Positions 6,942 through 63,057 are shown, numbered from the stretch's first letter. The stretch is DNA of 64,000 bases from IMGVR_UViG_3300047320_000285:62001-126000; one strand, 5' to 3'. Translations and numbers: made by a program. Notes: generated by a model not told the origin, from the letters alone.

Positions 6942-7052
6942 AATCGTGAGCTGCAACCTAAACAGCTCCTTTCTTTCGTGGGATTGACAGGATTACGGGG
7001 GTTCTGTCTCTTACTGACCATCCCCGATTATACTAGGAATAAGAATACAATC

Positions 7053-8930
7053 ATGAAGAAGAATATCATCGCAGTGGCAATTTTGGCTTCACTTGCTGTA
7101 TCGTCGGCATACGCAAATTGCGGTAATGGTGGTAGCAACGGGAATGGTTGCGGGGGCGAACAAGGACCGGCAGGCCCGCAAGGTCCCGCCGGTCCTCAGG
7201 GTCCGCAAGGTGTTGCGGGTCAGAACGGCAAGGACGGCGCGTCGGTTACTGGTGTCAGCATCAATGGCACTTCAGTCACGACAACGCTCTCCAATGGTTC
7301 GTCGGTGCAAGGTACGGTCACGGGGGTGGCTACGACTGCACAGCTGAACAGCACGAATAGCAACGTCGCGACGAACACGTCGAACATCACGACGCTGCAA
7401 GGTCAGGTTAGCCAGCAAGGCGGTGCAATCGCCGGTCTGCAGGTTAGTAGCGCCACGCACCAAGAAGTCGCTGACACGGCAGCCGGCACGCTGGCTGCCG
7501 CCAACGCCCACACGGATGCATCAGTGGGTGCAGAAGCGGCGCGCGCGAAGGGCGCCGAAGCAGGTCTGCAGTCGCAGATCAACGGCGTGAGCGGTACCGC
7601 CAACCAAGCGCTGGCGAATTCGAAGGACGCGCAGGCAACTGCGGGTCAAGCGAAGTCGATCGCGCAAGGCGCCGCGGCCACGGCTAACCAAGCCGAAGGC
7701 ATTGCAGTCGGTGCTGCTATCACAGCGACGGGTGCAGCGATCGTTGCCGGTCATGCAGAAGGCGTTGCTGAAAGTGCGGCCGCACAAGCCAAGTCGGCTA
7801 CGGCTACGGCGAACCATGCTGACTCAGTCGCCGGTCAAGCACTCGCAGCGGCGAAGGATGCCGACACGGATGCCGATGCGGCAGGCAAGGCAGCCGCACA
7901 CGCCCAAGGCACGGCAGACACAGCGCTGGCTTCGTCGGCACAAAACGCCAAGGACATCAAGTCCGAAGCGCAAGCCCGTGCAGCAGGCGATGCCGCCACG
8001 CTGAAGTCGGCCAATAGCTACACGGATTCGGCCGTGGCGAACGGGGTGTCGCAAGCAGAATCATACGCTGATGCTGGCGATGCCAAGACGCTGAATTCTG
8101 CGAACAAGCATGCGGACCAAGCCGCTGCGGCGGCCTACGTCGGTGCAGTCGCGACCTCGGCAGCTTACACGGATGCGACGGCGTCGAAGACGTTGAAGTC
8201 GGCGAATTCGTACACCGACAAAGCAGTTGGTGCCGAGTCTAGCCGCGCCCAATCGGCCGAAGGTCAACTGCAGTCCAACATCAATTCGGAATCGACTCGC
8301 GCGCAGACGGCTGAAGCTGGTCTGAACACGAAGATCGACAACGAAACGACGCGGGCGACGACAGCCGAAGCCGGGCTGCAAACCCAGATCAACGGGAACA
8401 GCCAGTCGATCACGCAAATCCAGTCGAACATGAACAAGGGCCAGATGGGTTCGGGCGCGCAAGTGCAATCGAACAACTCGGTGGCACTCGGTGCAGGTTC
8501 GGTGGCTGATCGTGACAACACGGTGTCGGTGGGTGCAGCAGGTGCCGAGCGTCAAGTGACGAACGTGGCAGCAGGTACGGCCGACACCGATGCGGTGAAC
8601 GTCGCGCAAGCTCGCTCGTACGCCCAGACGTCGTACCAGCAATCGACTGCTTACACGGATCAACGTGTGAACGCGCTGCAGAACTCGTTCGACAGCTTCA
8701 AGAAGGACACCTACGGTGGTCTGGCTTCGGTGCTGGCAATCGCGGGTCTGCCGCAACCGATCCAGAACGGCAAGTCGATGATCTCGGCGGCTGTCTCGAA
8801 CTACCACGGCGAGCAAGGTATTGCTGTCGGTATCTCAACCGTCCAAGGCAACTTCGTGATCAAGGCCGGTGTCTCCACGTCCACGCGCGGTGATGTCGGC
8901 GCAGTCGCTTCGGCAGGCTACCAGTTCTAA
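7053..8930 (+). CDS. YadA-family trimeric autotransporter adhesin with collagen-like segment
   Basis: Signal peptide [21 protein letters not shown]; (GXY)n; ANSYTD stalk repeats; [24 protein letters not shown] head-neck; beta-anchor ending GYQF. Confidence 0.9.
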
Positions 8931-43469: not shown

Positions 43470-43482
43470 AGCTTTATCTATA

Positions 43483-43976
43483 TAGAGGCGGCTGCCGCAG
43501 TCAGGTGTCCTTTAACAGTGCTTCGAGGCCTGCCGAAATCATCCGGCTGCGAAGGCTGCTTCTAACTGACATGAGCTGTTCAACGGCTCAGTGGCTCGAG
43601 GACTCACGATTTACTCGGGCTGATCCATTGTTCCGACTGGATCCCGTTACGGGGAGAACGACGGTAAATCGTACGGTAGGTGCGTAACACACCTGCAAGT
43701 TGTCCGTGTTAGTCCGAACGCGTTGCCTTAACGGCCTAGCGTGCTTGCCCCGCCGCGTATGCGGCACCTGTTGGGGCGCGTGTGATTGCCTGCGGTTCGT
43801 CCGCCGGGCGTTGCACTGGGCGGCTACATGCTGCCCGCGAAGCATGTGTGGCTGGCGAGCATGTCGGGCTGAATGTGCAGCCTCTAGGGTTCTTCCGTTA
43901 AACCGGAATATACGAGTGAGAGCCCCTGAGGAAGTGCATTCGAATCGTTCGAGACCATCCTCTAACCCCGTAGGGG
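43483..43976 (+). ncRNA. putative large structured ncRNA 1 (~490 nt), unknown class
   Basis: No RBS-supported ORF over ~590 nt; end pairing TAGAGG/CCTCTA; more than 10 helices including ACGATTTAC/GTAAATCGT; downstream terminator. Confidence 0.7.
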
Positions 43977-44003
43977 CTTTTTGATTCGTTCTATCGACGC
44001 TTC

Positions 44004-44040
44004 GTCATACGGGCCGAGCCTTCGGGCTCGGCTTTATGAT
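44004..44040. terminator. TCATA-hairpin-TATGA element
   Basis: GTCATAC GGGCCGAGCC-TTCG-GGCTCGGC TTTATGA. Confidence 0.8.
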
Positions 44041-45474: not shown

Positions 45475-45703
45475 CATTGACGTGCGGATTAACGGTAAGA
45501 ACTACCGCAACATCCGCACCTTCTCGCAGGCCCGCCTTGAACACATCCTGCAGTTGGCCAAGACGCAGGTGGACGACTACCGACGGTGCTACACGGACTT
45601 TGACGAACAAGCTGCCAAGAAAGCCTCTATTTTGGTCCATCTGAATGGACTGGAACAACGCGTGAAACTGATCGAAGAGGTGTTAAATGGGTTGGGAGGA
45701 TAA
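45443..45703 (+). CDS. small coiled-coil hypothetical protein (paralog of upstream gene)
   Basis: IDVRINGKNYRNI..F....LEH aligns with MDLVVNKRYYAQV..L....LTH. Confidence 0.6.
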   Translation: MTSSTGKKLPSIDVRINGKNYRNIRTFSQARLEHILQLAKTQVDDYRRCYTDFDEQAAKKASILVHLNGLEQRVKLIEEVLNGLGG

Positions 45704-46331
45704 GTACCGTAGACATACCTACGCGGCAGAACAACGCGGTATGGATACCAGCCTGACCTTCGATCAGTACATGACAAAGGTCAGGGAGGCTGGTATCGAA
45801 AACCCTGACCAGATCGGTAAGAGAGCGGGTCAGTTTCAGCTAGGGAGAGTCGGTGACGTCGGTCGTTATGAAGACGCTAACTGTCGCTTCATCACGGCTC
45901 GTCAGAATCGGCAAGAGTGTTTCCAGAACGGCCGTCATCTTGAAGGAATGAAGCGTCTATCGGAGCTTCGAACCGGTCAGACCAAAGATGTCTCGGAGTG
46001 GGCTAGAAAAATCTCGCAGACTCTTACTGGTAGGACGAAGGAAACCGATCCGGGTTTGGCAGCAATGGCTGAGAAATTGAGAGGCCGTACGGCAAGCACA
46101 GACCCTAGCTTGGCTTCGGCCGCTGATAAAAAATCACGCGATTTCGTCTTGGTCTCCCCTGATGGACAGATTCATGAAGGAAGAAACATAAGCGAATTTT
46201 GTCGAAGTCAAGGACTTTCTCAGGGAAAGATGTCGGATGTCTGTCGCGGAGACAGGCGTCAGCATAAAGGCTGGACCGGCCATTATCTCCCAGACGAGCC
46301 CGACTTCGTCTGTTATTTTCATGACGACTAA
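45687..46331 (+). CDS. free-standing HNH-like homing endonuclease (paralog of 11556..12188)
   Basis: RVGDVGRYEDANCRFITARQN; three 18-aa GRTKET-type repeats; NUMOD1-like HTH; ends EPDFVCYFHDD. Confidence 0.7.
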   Translation: MGWEDKYRRHTYAAEQRGMDTSLTFDQYMTKVREAGIENPDQIGKRAGQFQLGRVGDVGRYEDANCRFITARQNRQECFQNGRHLEGMKRLSELRTGQTKDVSEWARKISQTLTGRTKETDPGLAAMAEKLRGRTASTDPSLASAADKKSRDFVLVSPDGQIHEGRNISEFCRSQGLSQGKMSDVCRGDRRQHKGWTGHYLPDEPDFVCYFHDD

Positions 46332-46343
46332 CGGGAGTTTGCC

Positions 46344-46652
46344 ATGGGGTGGCGAAGAGGCCGCAAGATTTACGAGAGCCGTCCTGGGATGTTTATGTTT
46401 GACTGTCCCGGCTGTAAGTACGGGCATGCGTTCTACACCAAGGATGGTCCGGTAGTGAATGGCAAAGAACAGAACTGGACCTATAACGACGATGGGGATA
46501 AACCCACGATTTCGCCGAGTCTGGATGTGTGTCGCGATGACCCAGCCCATCACTGCCATTCGTTTATCCGTGATGGTATGATCCAGTTTTTAGGTGACTG
46601 CTTCCATTCTCTGAAGAATACGACGGTCGAGATCCCGGATTGGGATGACTGA
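46344..46652 (+). CDS. DUF6527-like Cys/His metal-binding protein
   Basis: F.CPGC..GH...W.YN.D.DKPT.SPSL....CHSFIRDG.IQFL.DC.H.L. Confidence 0.7.
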   Translation: MGWRRGRKIYESRPGMFMFDCPGCKYGHAFYTKDGPVVNGKEQNWTYNDDGDKPTISPSLDVCRDDPAHHCHSFIRDGMIQFLGDCFHSLKNTTVEIPDWDD

Positions 46653-46682: not shown

Positions 46683-47438
46683 ATGACCTCTCTTTCGAAA
46701 CCGACCAATGTGTCGATTCCTCTGGACGGCAGTTGGCTCAACGTGGGCGAAGGCCCGTTGCGGCTGACGCTGGTGTCTTTCAACAACTCGATCCTCGTGG
46801 CGGCTAACGCCGTCGCCCCCGACAACACCTTCACGGGTGATGTCTTCGTGGCTAACCCGGGCAGTAACCATATCGACTTTGACGACGTCACGGTCTGGGT
46901 GAAGGCCAAGGGTACGCCCGATCAAACCAAGCCCATCAGCGTGCTCCTGCAGCCTCTGGTGGATGCACCGGTCAGCACCTCGCCCGAGACCCGTCAACCG
47001 ACGGCGACGCCGGCCGCGGTCGCCAAGACGTACTCGGCGGGTCAGTCGATCGGTGGCGCGTTTGCGATTCCGGGCGCGATTGGTAACGCGGCGGGCTTGC
47101 TGCGCTCGATCCTGATCAAATCGATGACCGTCCTCACGGGCGAACTCGATCTGTATCTGTTCTCGCAAAAGCCGAGCACGGGCTTTGCGGACGCCGCCGC
47201 ACTGGGTACGTTGGTGCCGGGCGATCTGGCGTTGCTGCTCGGGCTGTTCAAGCTGAGCGCAGTCGATTCGTCCTTGGGCGTGTCAGTGTATCAGCTCAAC
47301 GACATCAACCAGATGGTGGTGGCCGTGGGTGGCACGGTGTACGGGGTACTGGTGCCCAAGGGTGCCGTCGCGCTCGAGAACCCGACCGACATCACCGTGT
47401 CGCTGGGCATCCAGCAAGGCAGTGGTGGATACATGTAA
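46683..47438 (+). CDS. hypothetical beta-rich protein (possible virion component)
   Basis: 251 aa, Ala/Gly/Thr/Val-rich. Confidence 0.7.
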   Translation: MTSLSKPTNVSIPLDGSWLNVGEGPLRLTLVSFNNSILVAANAVAPDNTFTGDVFVANPGSNHIDFDDVTVWVKAKGTPDQTKPISVLLQPLVDAPVSTSPETRQPTATPAAVAKTYSAGQSIGGAFAIPGAIGNAAGLLRSILIKSMTVLTGELDLYLFSQKPSTGFADAAALGTLVPGDLALLLGLFKLSAVDSSLGVSVYQLNDINQMVVAVGGTVYGVLVPKGAVALENPTDITVSLGIQQGSGGYM

Positions 47439-47466
47439 AAATTTACGTCATCTCCGGATGATGTAG

Positions 47467-47903
47467 ACGCGCACCATGCCTCGTGCATAGGCGGTGACTT
47501 TCGCTCCCAAAGGCGAAGCACAGACCCAGTCATCGCTCATCGAGGTACCAGCATTGCTTCCGAAAGGGTGAAGGGTTTCGATAGCCCGAGCTGGTAGAAT
47601 GTGTTACCGGCCACGAGCCGCTACTCGTCGCTGGCTGCCTGACTAACCGCAAGGAGGTCGGACAGAACTCGTTCGTGTGGCCAATCCCACAACGAGTGAC
47701 TCGCAACACACACCTAAACCCCCGTCGCCAATCACGCGAGTCGGTCGGGCACGGTGAACAGAGTCAACCACTAACGTGTGTAAGGGGAGCCTCATCAACT
47801 CCGAGTAGGGCGTGGCGAAAGGCCTCGCCTGTTCAACCGAGCACATCAGGGCGAAAGTCGAGCGTTAGTGAATCGGTGGTACGCGCTTGCCCGCAAGGGG
47901 GTA
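47467..47903 (+). ncRNA. putative large structured ncRNA 2 (~440 nt), unknown class
   Basis: Nested helices (GCGGTGACT/AGTCATCGC, TACCAGC/GCTGGTA, ACTCGTT/AACGAGT, GACTCGC/GCGAGTC, CACTAACG/CGTTAGTG), GNRA tetraloops, end pairing, downstream terminator. Confidence 0.72.
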
Positions 47904-47906
47904 TTC

Positions 47907-47936
47907 GACCCGGCCCCCAAGGCTGGGTCTTATGCC
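47907..47936 (+). terminator. hairpin + TATGCC terminator-like element
   Basis: GACCCGGCC-CCCAA-GGCTGGGTC TTATGCC. Confidence 0.8.
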
Positions 47937-47958
47937 GTGTTCCAAAAGTTTTGAACAA

Positions 47959-47966
47959 TATATTAC
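47959..47966 (+). promoter_or_regulatory. early promoter motif TATATTAC
   Basis: Exact motif directly after a terminator. Confidence 0.7.
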
Positions 47967-47984
47967 CCCCGTGAGCAGACAACC

Positions 47985-48317
47985 ATGAACTGCTCTAACA
48001 CTACCATTATACCGGAGATTAGATCGATGAGTAATCAGCTTGCCGCGATTATGGCTAACTTCAAAGCGCTCCACGATCAAGTGGAGGCGGACGATAAAGC
48101 CAGCCGGCCAGTAGACGGGATGTACTGGATCGAGCGGGCAGGTAAGCGCACCAACTGCTGCTCGAACGACTATGTCCATGCGCACGGTCATGGCGGGCCG
48201 TGTAACTGCGGCTATCGCGATGCCGACTTCCGGGCGATTAGCGAAGTGATGGGACCCGAAGTGGCCTATCAAGCCTACCTCAATAACCTTGCCAAGAATG
48301 GAGTGAAGCATGCCTGA
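47985..48317 (+). CDS. Cys/His-rich hypothetical protein (start may be 48027)
   Basis: ORF after an early promoter; GGAG RBS before the second Met. Confidence 0.65.
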   Translation: MNCSNTTIIPEIRSMSNQLAAIMANFKALHDQVEADDKASRPVDGMYWIERAGKRTNCCSNDYVHAHGHGGPCNCGYRDADFRAISEVMGPEVAYQAYLNNLAKNGVKHA

Positions 48318-48745: not shown

Positions 48746-49201
48746 ATGGCTTCGAAACGTGCACAAGCGTACATGAACGAGTTCCATGCCCGCAAACTCG
48801 GCAAAGGTCAGGCCAAGATCCTGAACTACTACGAGTACGAGAATCTCGAATACATCGAGACGAATTTTCGCGGTCAACTGAAGGTCCAGCTCTACCGTGA
48901 CGGCATGGAAGAGTTCAGCTACTGGCTTAACCAGAAGGAACGTCAGCCGCTGATTATCGGTATGCTCAAGGCTGGGCTTAAGCAAGCCATGATCGCCAAG
49001 ATCCTCAAGCTCTCGGGCAGCACGATCAACAAGGACGTGCGTTGGTTGCGTCTGAACACCGACAAGCTCGACAGCGTCACCACGCTGCGTGCGCTGCGCC
49101 CGGCCCGTTACGCGGATGCAGACGACGTGTTCCTCAAGCGTGTCGCGCGTGAACAGAATCGCGTCACCGGCATGCCGGCGGCCGTGATCGTGTTGCACTG
49201 A
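48746..49201 (+). CDS. HTH-containing protein
   Basis: AAGGA RBS; GLKQAMIAKILKLSGSTINKDV. Confidence 0.75.
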   Translation: MASKRAQAYMNEFHARKLGKGQAKILNYYEYENLEYIETNFRGQLKVQLYRDGMEEFSYWLNQKERQPLIIGMLKAGLKQAMIAKILKLSGSTINKDVRWLRLNTDKLDSVTTLRALRPARYADADDVFLKRVAREQNRVTGMPAAVIVLH

Positions 49202-61920: not shown

Positions 61921-63057
61921 TCAGTCGCGCGGGCCACCGGCCCCACGCATGTGTTTCAGTTTTGCTGCATCCATTTTAAAGCGTCGATCGAGTTCGACGA
62001 TGCGATCCAGCACCGTTTCCCGATCCTTGTATTCGTCCATGGTGCGCTTGACCACCGCCTTCCAGAAGTCAATCACTGTGTCGGTCAGCTGGAAGACACC
62101 GCTGCGCAGCTGGTCAAGCATCGCCAAAGCCTTCAGGATAGGCTGCAATTCCTTCCAGAACGCCGCATAGCCGTCCAGCATGGTCTTGGCCTTAGTACGG
62201 AGTGCCTCATCGGTGCTCGCCCGTTCTGTAGCCTGTGTATGGCGCTGCGCCAGCTCCAGATCTTTCTCGATCAGTTCGATTTCTTTCTCCCACCGCATGA
62301 ATGTTTCCACGGTAGCCGAGCCGGAGAGCGTCTGAGCCATCGCCGCCAATACTGCGGCCAGCTTGTCTGGGTTCGCAGGCAGCCGATCAGTGCCTTTGTT
62401 CTTGTAGGCCACCGCAATCAGGTCGTGGATGGTCTGTAGTTTCTCAGGCAGACTTTCGAATTGAGCATGCACGGAGTCGATCTGCTTTTGCACGTTCTGG
62501 GTATCATCGTCTTGCAACGGGTGGCTGGGTCCGAGCTTGGCGAGTGCCACCAACATCGCACTGGCCTTGACCACTTCGCTCTGGTTGCCGGTGTCGAGCA
62601 TCTTCTCGACTGCTGCCACCGTCCCCAAGTAGGCCTTGGGGTCATCCAGCAAGGCGTGAGCGGTCGCAGACAGCTTGGCCGAATACTGCTTATCCAGACC
62701 ATCGGCTTTTGCCACTGACTCCATGCGCGAGTCCGGATCAGCATCTTTGAAGCCGCGGATGGTTTCTTCCATCACCTCGTACTGATGGACGATCTCTTTG
62801 TTGATCTTGCGACCCCGATCGCCCTTGACCTTGTTGAACAGCCACTTGGCGACACCTTTGATGGTAGCCAGCACCGCAGCGATCAGTTTAGCGATCTTGG
62901 CCCAGATGGCGCGAGCCACGCCTTCCACCTTCTCGCCCAACGATTCCGTTGACAGCGCGAGCATGTCTTCCTGCGCACTCAGTGGCACCGCAATAAACAT
63001 CCCTTCAACAATCTCGACCTGCTCGCCTTCCAACGCGAGCTTGAGCAAACGTCCCAT
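61921..63057 (-). CDS. phiKZ-like internal head protein paralog
   Basis: MGRLLKLALEGEQVEIVEGMFIAVP...LSTESLGE. Confidence 0.75.
   Translation of the reverse strand: MGRLLKLALEGEQVEIVEGMFIAVPLSAQEDMLALSTESLGEKVEGVARAIWAKIAKLIAAVLATIKGVAKWLFNKVKGDRGRKINKEIVHQYEVMEETIRGFKDADPDSRMESVAKADGLDKQYSAKLSATAHALLDDPKAYLGTVAAVEKMLDTGNQSEVVKASAMLVALAKLGPSHPLQDDDTQNVQKQIDSVHAQFESLPEKLQTIHDLIAVAYKNKGTDRLPANPDKLAAVLAAMAQTLSGSATVETFMRWEKEIELIEKDLELAQRHTQATERASTDEALRTKAKTMLDGYAAFWKELQPILKALAMLDQLRSGVFQLTDTVIDFWKAVVKRTMDEYKDRETVLDRIVELDRRFKMDAAKLKHMRGAGGPRD

Follow-up and report, generated by a model that had tools for sequence, protein, structure and literature searches.

A new family of large structured RNAs in soil and rhizosphere jumbo phages, with a probable pseudoknot-type core arranged like that of group I introns

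GOLLD, ROOL and OLE are large ornate RNAs of unknown function (PMC12286853). In group I introns, the consensus of the Rfam model runs through the core in the order GACUA, AA, the 3' strand of P3, cA, P8, UgAAGAUA and UAGUC. A non-coding RNA of a jumbo phage, here called ncRNA 2, can be set beside both. Its core runs in the order GACUC, AAG, GACACA, a P8-like hairpin, AAGCA and GAGUC, and is built like a group I core; the RNA itself is not called a group I intron. Within it lies an A/C-rich segment that an earlier note, made from this one sequence, had read as a 31-nt exposed loop (47705-47735). Comparison with related phages gives the segment a different role, and the evidence for that role is set out below together with the alternatives.

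The window, meaning the whole stretch of 64,000 nucleotides that was analysed, comprises bases 62001-126000 of virus record IMGVR_UViG_3300047320_000285, and coordinates are counted from its first base unless they are given for the genome or for another contig. The source record is 253,740 bp long (~254 kb) and has direct terminal repeats, and is therefore assigned to a jumbo phage. The public sequencing runs found to contain the stretch are one rhizosphere metagenome and one soil metagenome, both of DNA, and no RNA-seq run is among them. A 650-aa tail-fibre-like protein (6978-8930, + strand) is 85% identical over its C-terminal half to a protein of the Burkholderia glumae jumbo phage FLC9, a likeness that suggests a common receptor-binding domain and a Burkholderia-type host, probably Burkholderia or Paraburkholderia.

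The A/C-rich segment falls within a 546-nt gap that separates an open reading frame of 251 aa (46683-47438) from one of 110 aa (47985-48317), and neither of these flanking proteins matches Pfam or PHROGs. The fold predicted for the upstream 251-aa protein (pLDDT 82) is a double beta-sandwich of two domains; its structural matches are uncharacterised phage proteins only, and no sign of RNA binding comes from the predicted fold or from those matches. Directly 5' of the 251-aa gene there is always a BubE (DUF6527, PF20137) gene (46344-46652, + strand), even in a distant relative that lacks the RNA. A 214-aa HNH endonuclease (PHROG 2081; I-HmuI NUMOD-like; 45687-46331, + strand) is encoded between an 86-aa gene and the BubE gene in this phage only, its relatives having no such gene, and looks like the insertion of a free-standing homing endonuclease. 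Homologs of the 251-aa protein that are followed by the RNA carry a C-terminal extension of 4-5 aa, which the RNA-less homologs do not have, and the nucleotides that span the stop codon are conserved (YUGUAAA, four A/U, UAC). On the 3' side of the RNA, a conserved 151-aa gene (48746-49201, + strand) is assigned by one source to the CsgD family of DNA-binding regulators; a search with its product returned three clusters only. In relatives, the C-terminal domain of RNA polymerase alpha (PF03118) occurs in a protein encoded a few genes after the 151-aa gene (L004:6235-6759, L014:6459-6759), and the two neighbours may mean that this cluster helps the phage to control the RNA polymerase of its host.

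Conservation places the putative 5' end of ncRNA 2 immediately 3' of the 251-aa stop codon and its putative 3' end at a conserved UUAUGCCG, giving an RNA of 499 nt (47439-47937, + strand). The 251-aa protein has 11 relatives in a collection of 5.8 billion proteins. All recovered loci of relatives at 60-84% identity have a gap of ~560-670 nt directly after the gene, and a relative listed without DNA (P0003) has a gap of 519 nt there; in L011 (44% identity), the sole distant relative for which DNA was recovered, the genes stand in the same order with neither gap nor RNA. Two further RNA sequences were recovered from members of protein clusters. ncRNA 2 is represented by 11 distinct versions, from the window and ten relatives, which are 434-518 nt long and 59-93% identical in pairs; all are located 3' of the 251-aa gene, and all belong to one clade of soil/rhizosphere jumbo phages. 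Gene callers place no gene in the RNA gap of any contig, and the genes 3' of the RNA differ from phage to phage, with products of 96, 101, 104, 107, 110 or 151 aa. A covariance model of ncRNA 2 built in this study has a single hit at each locus; it has no other hit in the window and no hit at all in the RNA-less relative. Searches of 50,697 GenBank phages by blastn and tblastn with the RNA and both flanking proteins yielded no homologs. No extra copies came from scans for the core-motif pattern in IMG/VR viral contigs, JGI metagenome contigs and GTDB genomes or from protein-guided scans, and a profile protein search added no new relatives.

That ncRNA 2 is a real and highly structured non-coding RNA, as the earlier note had proposed, is borne out by comparison. 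RNAalifold predicts 103 pairs from nine sequences, 44 of them with compensatory changes, and the z-score of the minimum free energy is -4.25 on the + strand versus -1.97 on the - strand. The RNA is assigned to the + strand because its conserved G-U pairs and GNRA loops are sensible on that strand only. Conservation peaks in the junctions and loops, and there are five GNRA tetraloops, four in the conserved core and one on an optional hairpin (H10). Neither the window nor eight homolog loci contain any Rfam family at the gathering score, or anything meaningful at E <= 10. A weak similarity of 47858-47933 to the Burkholderia anti-hemB RNA (15 bits, E = 0.83) was set aside; it covers the terminal hairpins alone and is chance-level. 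The conclusion that ncRNA 2 represents a new family of large, compactly folded phage RNAs is well supported.

The predicted architecture, all on the + strand, begins with a 5' hairpin (47443-47466), followed by the 5' strand (47467-47479) of a closing helix whose 3' strand (47874-47885) joins the two ends of the RNA; RNAalifold gives this helix 11 pairs, several of which occur as two to four pair types. Next come a hairpin domain with an invariant bulge, ACAGACCCAG (47490-47537), a three-way domain with a GAAA loop (47546-47596), the core, and a 3' multi-helix domain (47769-47870) that includes a CCUCAUCAA loop, an optional hairpin, GUUCAAC and a GAAA hairpin. Helices of the 3' domain are H8, in which 47769-77 pairs with 47862-70 (nine pairs, five changed on both sides); H8b, in which 47778-81 pairs with 47841-44 (four pairs, three changed on both sides); the hairpin H9 (47786-47802), in which a GGAG/CUCC stem, replaced by a compensatory GGCG/CGCC in L002, carries the conserved 9-nt loop CCUCAUCAA; and the optional GNRA-capped H10 (47808-47830). 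A GNRA hairpin (47890-47899) leads to a 3' module (47900-47966) consisting of a GC-rich hairpin, UUAUGCCG, 21 nt and TATATTAC. This composite, (U)UAUGCCG after a GC-rich hairpin, then ~21 nt and TATATTAC, is generic: five copies, always on the + strand, are found in the 254-kb genome at positions 63054, 109959, 116739, 134431 and 219134 (the second, third and first of which are window positions 47959, 54739 and 1054), and TATATTAC occurs three times in the window versus 0.28 expected. The module is not specific to ncRNA 2; its first part is probably a terminator or processing signal and its second a phage-specific promoter.

The only invariant part of the A/C-rich segment is CACACAC (47707-13), identical in 11 of 11 sequences, and it falls across two helices, A and C, that RNAalifold predicts unprompted. 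Helix A pairs the first six nucleotides of the segment, AACACA (47705-47710), with UGUGUU (47600-47605), 100 nt upstream, the counterpart of the 5' strand of P3 in group I terms. The upstream strand reads UGUGUC in most homologs and UGUGCC in L016; nowhere else in the alignment is there a segment that complements RRCACA in all sequences. Pairs are standard in all 11 sequences and two of the six are changed on both sides: 47605:47705 is U-A in the window versus C-G in ten homologs, and 47604:47706 is U-A versus C-G in L016. Helix C, which is P8-like, pairs CACC (47711-47714) with GGUG (47753-47756), 40 nt downstream, and would stack on helix A with no linker between them. GGUG belongs to a near-invariant RGUGAA (GGUGAA in ten sequences, AGUGAA in L016), and L016 has a compensatory change at 47714:47753 (CACU/AGUG, U-A versus C-G). 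The three double changes are independent of one another and set the register of both helices. The ten pairs of helices A and C are standard in 90 of 90 cells of the nine-sequence alignment and 100% paired in all 11 sequences; when the partner strand was slid by 1-3 columns as a control, at most 53 of the 90 cells paired. Among ungapped columns, 3.2% are changed in the window only and 3.8% in L016 only, and three matched complementary changes are therefore very unlikely to have arisen by chance, each of them being seen in a single lineage among 11 sequences of one phage clade.

What remains of the A/C-rich segment, together with the 3' arm of the stem formerly drawn beside it, forms an A-rich internal loop (UAAA/CAC) and a variable hairpin (47715-47752), which in the window is CCC-CCG-UCGC [CAAUCAC] GCGA-GU-CGG-UC-GGG. 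A hairpin folds at this place in every homolog; CACC and GGUG are separated by an insert of 31-40 nt (38 nt in the window) whose sequence varies, and the inner pairs covary, four of them having changed on both sides. Helix A also encloses three hairpins (47607-47697), on which the folds of individual sequences agree: Ha (47607-34), Hb (47635-65), which has a conserved CUAACC-GNRA-GGAGG, and Hc (47667-97), which is absent from L004. The helices of these hairpins are 94-100% paired in a model-based alignment of the core, with 14 of 23 pairs changed on both sides. Over the entire core domain, that type of alignment has 96.5% of its cells paired versus 84.2% in shuffles, and 21 pairs changed on both sides versus 9.5; on each measure the observed value was never attained in 500 shuffles, and slid controls are at most 46% paired. 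Helices A and C are shown by covariation, as are the variable hairpin and the fold as a whole. As a separate observation, Hb has an invariant UAA/AG internal loop beside its CC-GNRA-GG tip (CUAACCGAAAGGAGG), a combination that we take to resemble the 11-nt tetraloop receptor CCUAAG...UAUGG, and Hb could dock another GNRA loop of ncRNA 2.

A third helix, B, would pair GACUC (47698-47702), which is P7-like and had served as part of the 5' arm of the earlier stem, with GAGUC (47761-47765), and because this pairing crosses helix A it would create a pseudoknot. GACUC lies 2-3 nt 5' of the 3' strand of helix A, and GAGUC lies 4-5 nt 3' of helix C; the two junctions measure 2 + 4 nt in the window and in L002, and 3 + 5 nt in the other sequences. 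The 5' strand is kept in 11 of 11 sequences, with GAUUC in L002 producing a G-U pair. The 3' strand is AAGUC in L004, where the inner pair of the helix is lost and where alone an outer C-G pair can be gained with a bulged A. In the ensemble of the window's RNA, helix B has a probability of 0.99, versus 0.73 for helix C and 0.001 for the earlier stem. The 11 sequences contain no compensatory change in helix B, only the G-U pair of L002 and the mismatch of L004, and so we infer helix B, and with it the pseudoknot, from conserved and predicted pairing. Folds constrained to contain helices A and C (-60.3 kcal/mol) or helices B and C (-61.5 kcal/mol) are near-isoenergetic, so that both together would add stability. 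Taken as a whole, the A/C-rich segment is probably the shared central strand of a pseudoknot-type core in a structured phage RNA of ~500 nt, with helices A and C stacked and helix B most likely crossing helix A. This core would join three domains, namely the 5' hairpins, the three hairpins enclosed by helix A and the 3' multi-helix domain, and would sit inside the 11-pair closing helix that brings both RNA ends together.

Since helix B lacks compensatory changes, the pseudoknot could instead be two alternative conformations, with helices A and B mutually exclusive and the RNA acting as a conformational switch, either co-transcriptionally or in dependence on a ligand or protein. The conservation of both strand pairs suits such a switch, as does the fact that helices A and B exclude each other in nested folding at nearly the same energy. 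However, the linker lengths and the strand order match the P7/P3/P8 pseudoknot of group I introns, in which the helices coexist; the two junction strands change length together; and the RNA is followed by a separate promoter-like module, so that no expression platform can be seen downstream. We consider a switch unlikely, and prefer the pseudoknot-type core in which all three helices would be present at once.

Given this core, ncRNA 2 might be thought a bona fide self-splicing group I intron, the P1 and splice sites of which have gone unrecognised. The likeness was checked by means of the consensus of the Rfam group I model (RF00028), which was also run on phage T4. Helices A and C, 100% paired with three compensatory changes, have the places of P3 and P8, and the conserved GACUC/GAGUC, with its ensemble probability of 0.99, would cross the P3-like helix as P7 does and resembles GACUA/UAGUC, covariation being absent from it in the 11 sequences. 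The similar sequences of P7, J7/3 and J8/7, the GNRA loops, and the C-terminal extension that distinguishes 251-aa homologs with the RNA from those without it also speak for an intron. Yet RF00028 has no match at E <= 10 in searches of 801 nt and 191 nt of the window, in eight homolog loci or in the entire phage genome, although the same model finds all three T4 introns (105, 40 and 36 bits). The 5' hairpin has a U-G at its basal pair only (in eight of nine sequences), the bases upstream of it cannot extend the helix, and there is no exon pairing that could stand for P1. Codons up to the stop of the 251-aa gene vary at synonymous sites, the genes on the downstream side differ among phages, and Ha has no A-rich J4/5 loop. 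Membership in group I fails because of the missing covariance-model match, P1, guide and J4/5, the intergenic location, the synonymous variation and the helix that joins both ends, and a true intron at this site appears very improbable.

The reading of the earlier note was that GACTCGC (47698-47704) and GCGAGTC (47736-47742) form a 7-bp stem that exposes the A/C-rich segment as a loop, available for downstream pseudoknots, for kissing contacts, or as a guide or template. Its letters are correct: both arms of the stem are present, the 31-nt loop is almost devoid of G and U (11 A, 15 C, 2 G and 3 T), and three complementary segments, GTGTGT (47776-81), GGGG (47784-87) and TGGCGA (47813-18), occur downstream. 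However, each pair of the stem has a probability of ~0.001 (~0.1%) in the partition function of the 499-nt RNA, and the single-sequence minimum free energy fold omits the stem, pairing GACUC (47698-702) with GAGUC (47761-65) and CACC with GGUG instead. The stem can form in this phage only, the aligned positions of every other homolog being non-complementary or gapped. Between the loop and the 76 nt that follow, complementarity exceeds chance only mildly: three register-distinct perfect 6-mers are present where 2000 dinucleotide shuffles average 0.55 (P ~0.02), and two of the three are the two registers of the ACACACAC (AC) repeat; 5-mers show no excess over shuffles in the same comparison (P = 0.59).

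The proposed partners fare no better across the family. While ACACAC is invariant, GTGTGT becomes GTGCGT, GTGCAT, GTGCGC or GTACGT in homologs, and its bases are divided between two covarying helices, H8 and H8b. GGGG is invariant and the CCCC of the loop is not conserved (TTTT, GCGC, CGGT and others), and the last two G belong to the covarying local hairpin H9. TGGCGA is part of H10, in place of which four of the nine aligned homologs (L002, L004, L015 and L016) have a gap, and in the others the bases aligned with TGGCGA do not complement the loop. ACACAC does take part in long-range pairing, as had been supposed, with the difference that its partner is upstream, at 47600-47605, and not downstream. 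Absence of covariation between loop and partners, and a loop conserved in neither length nor composition, had been named in advance as what would refute the proposal; both are found, and the specific proposal is therefore refuted on its own terms. As a guide or template, the conserved part of the segment would have to be exposed, and as a guide also variable among relatives, but it is base-paired with compensatory changes and is invariant. No match to RVT_1 (PF00078), Cas12f1-like_TNB (PF07282) or DEDD_Tnp_IS110 (PF01548) was found in the 253,740-bp record, and domains of a reverse transcriptase, a TnpB/IscB-type nuclease or an IS110 recombinase are likewise missing from the proteins encoded next to the RNA. 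The notion of an exposed loop, guide or template can be dropped on this comparative evidence, there being next to no likelihood left for it.

It is scarcely credible that the region is no discrete functional RNA at all, being a long 3' UTR, a terminator/promoter spacer or an unannotated 99-aa open reading frame, for although such a frame (47675-47974) overlaps ncRNA 2 and a generic terminator/promoter module is located at its 3' end, the 44 covarying pairs, indels that are not multiples of three, gain and loss of entire hairpins, the greatest conservation in junctions and loops, and the lack of a called gene in the gap of any contig all speak for an RNA.

Several known identities were tried and rejected. 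ARAGORN finds no tRNA or tmRNA genes in the window. An RNase P-like identity, an idea that arose from what we assume to be RNase P motifs (ACAGA...CCC and GAAAGUC), was abandoned because the order of the elements is reversed and there is no Rfam match. A riboswitch or leader for the downstream gene was discarded because the downstream genes vary and the promoter-like module intervenes.

A second conserved structured RNA, ncRNA 1, is located at 43470-44040 (+ strand), between a 97-aa gene and a 65-aa HTH_17 gene in all relatives. Its alignment has 80% column identity and yields 183 pairs in RNAalifold, of which 39 show compensatory changes. The 3' part contains a CCCC-GUA-GGGG hairpin followed by a U-run (~43961-43985), and then a second hairpin followed by UUUAUGAUGU. 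No Rfam match was found for ncRNA 1.

With regard to function, the compact tertiary fold that we infer for ncRNA 2, in which the invariant strand would nucleate the core, is consistent with a ribozyme-like RNA or with a scaffold that binds protein or RNA. ncRNA 2 may conceivably be a P1-less group-I-like ribozyme or a new class of ribozyme, intergenic and with an active site around the CACACAC strand, a tentative suggestion under which it might work with the second conserved RNA, of ~570 nt, 3.4 kb upstream. Alternatively, it may switch between helices A and B, serve as a scaffold for protein or RNA, or be an oligomeric ornate RNA of the GOLLD/ROOL type (PMC12286853). With the idea of a loop exposed for guiding, templating or downstream pairing dropped, what remains is a new phage RNA family whose invariant core shares its strand topology and junction letters with the catalytic centre of group I introns but lacks the substrate helix and the intron context. 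Should the RNA prove catalytic, a group-I-like fold would have been put to a use other than splicing, which would be rare; if not, the few large structured phage RNAs of unknown function would gain a tractable member of ~430-520 nt, for which L004 provides a natural minimal version (434 nt). The presence of two such RNAs in one early-gene cluster makes this phage clade a good system in which to study their function.

Compared with the RNAs that expose guides or templates (retron/DRT ncRNAs, omega RNAs, IS110 bridge RNAs and telomerase-type RNAs), the likeness of ncRNA 2 is superficial, consisting of an A/C-rich stretch beside structured domains; unlike theirs, its stretch is paired and invariant (CACACAC), and no cognate protein is encoded in the genome. 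With GOLLD, ROOL and OLE, ncRNA 2 has in common that it is a phage-carried non-coding RNA of 430-520 nt with many helices and pseudoknot-type contacts. It differs from them in having no tRNA neighbours and in being confined to one clade of soil/rhizosphere jumbo phages, and the covariance models of the three RNAs do not match it, Rfam at E <= 10 giving chance-level small hits only. Group I introns differ from ncRNA 2 in possessing P1, an internal guide sequence and the splice-site U-G; in having an A-rich J4/5, where Ha is a near-continuous stem of 10-12 bp in all homologs; in having a linker between the 3' strand of P3 and P8; and in enclosing a P4-P5/P6 pair between the P3 strands, where ncRNA 2 has three hairpins. 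ncRNA 2 is moreover closed over its entire length by an 11-pair helix, and follows a complete 251-aa reading frame without interrupting any gene. In its core, however, the 3' strand of a P3-like long-range helix is placed between a P7-like 5' strand and a P8-like hairpin, as in group I; the order of helix B 5' strand, 2-3 nt, helix A 3' strand, hairpin, 4-5 nt and helix B 3' strand mimics P7-J7/3-P3'-P8-J8/7-P7', with junctions of similar length; the letters are similar (GACUC/GAGUC beside the consensus GACUA/UAGUC, with AA(G) and AAG... junctions); and both RNAs have a stack of hairpins between the P3 strands and several GNRA tetraloops.
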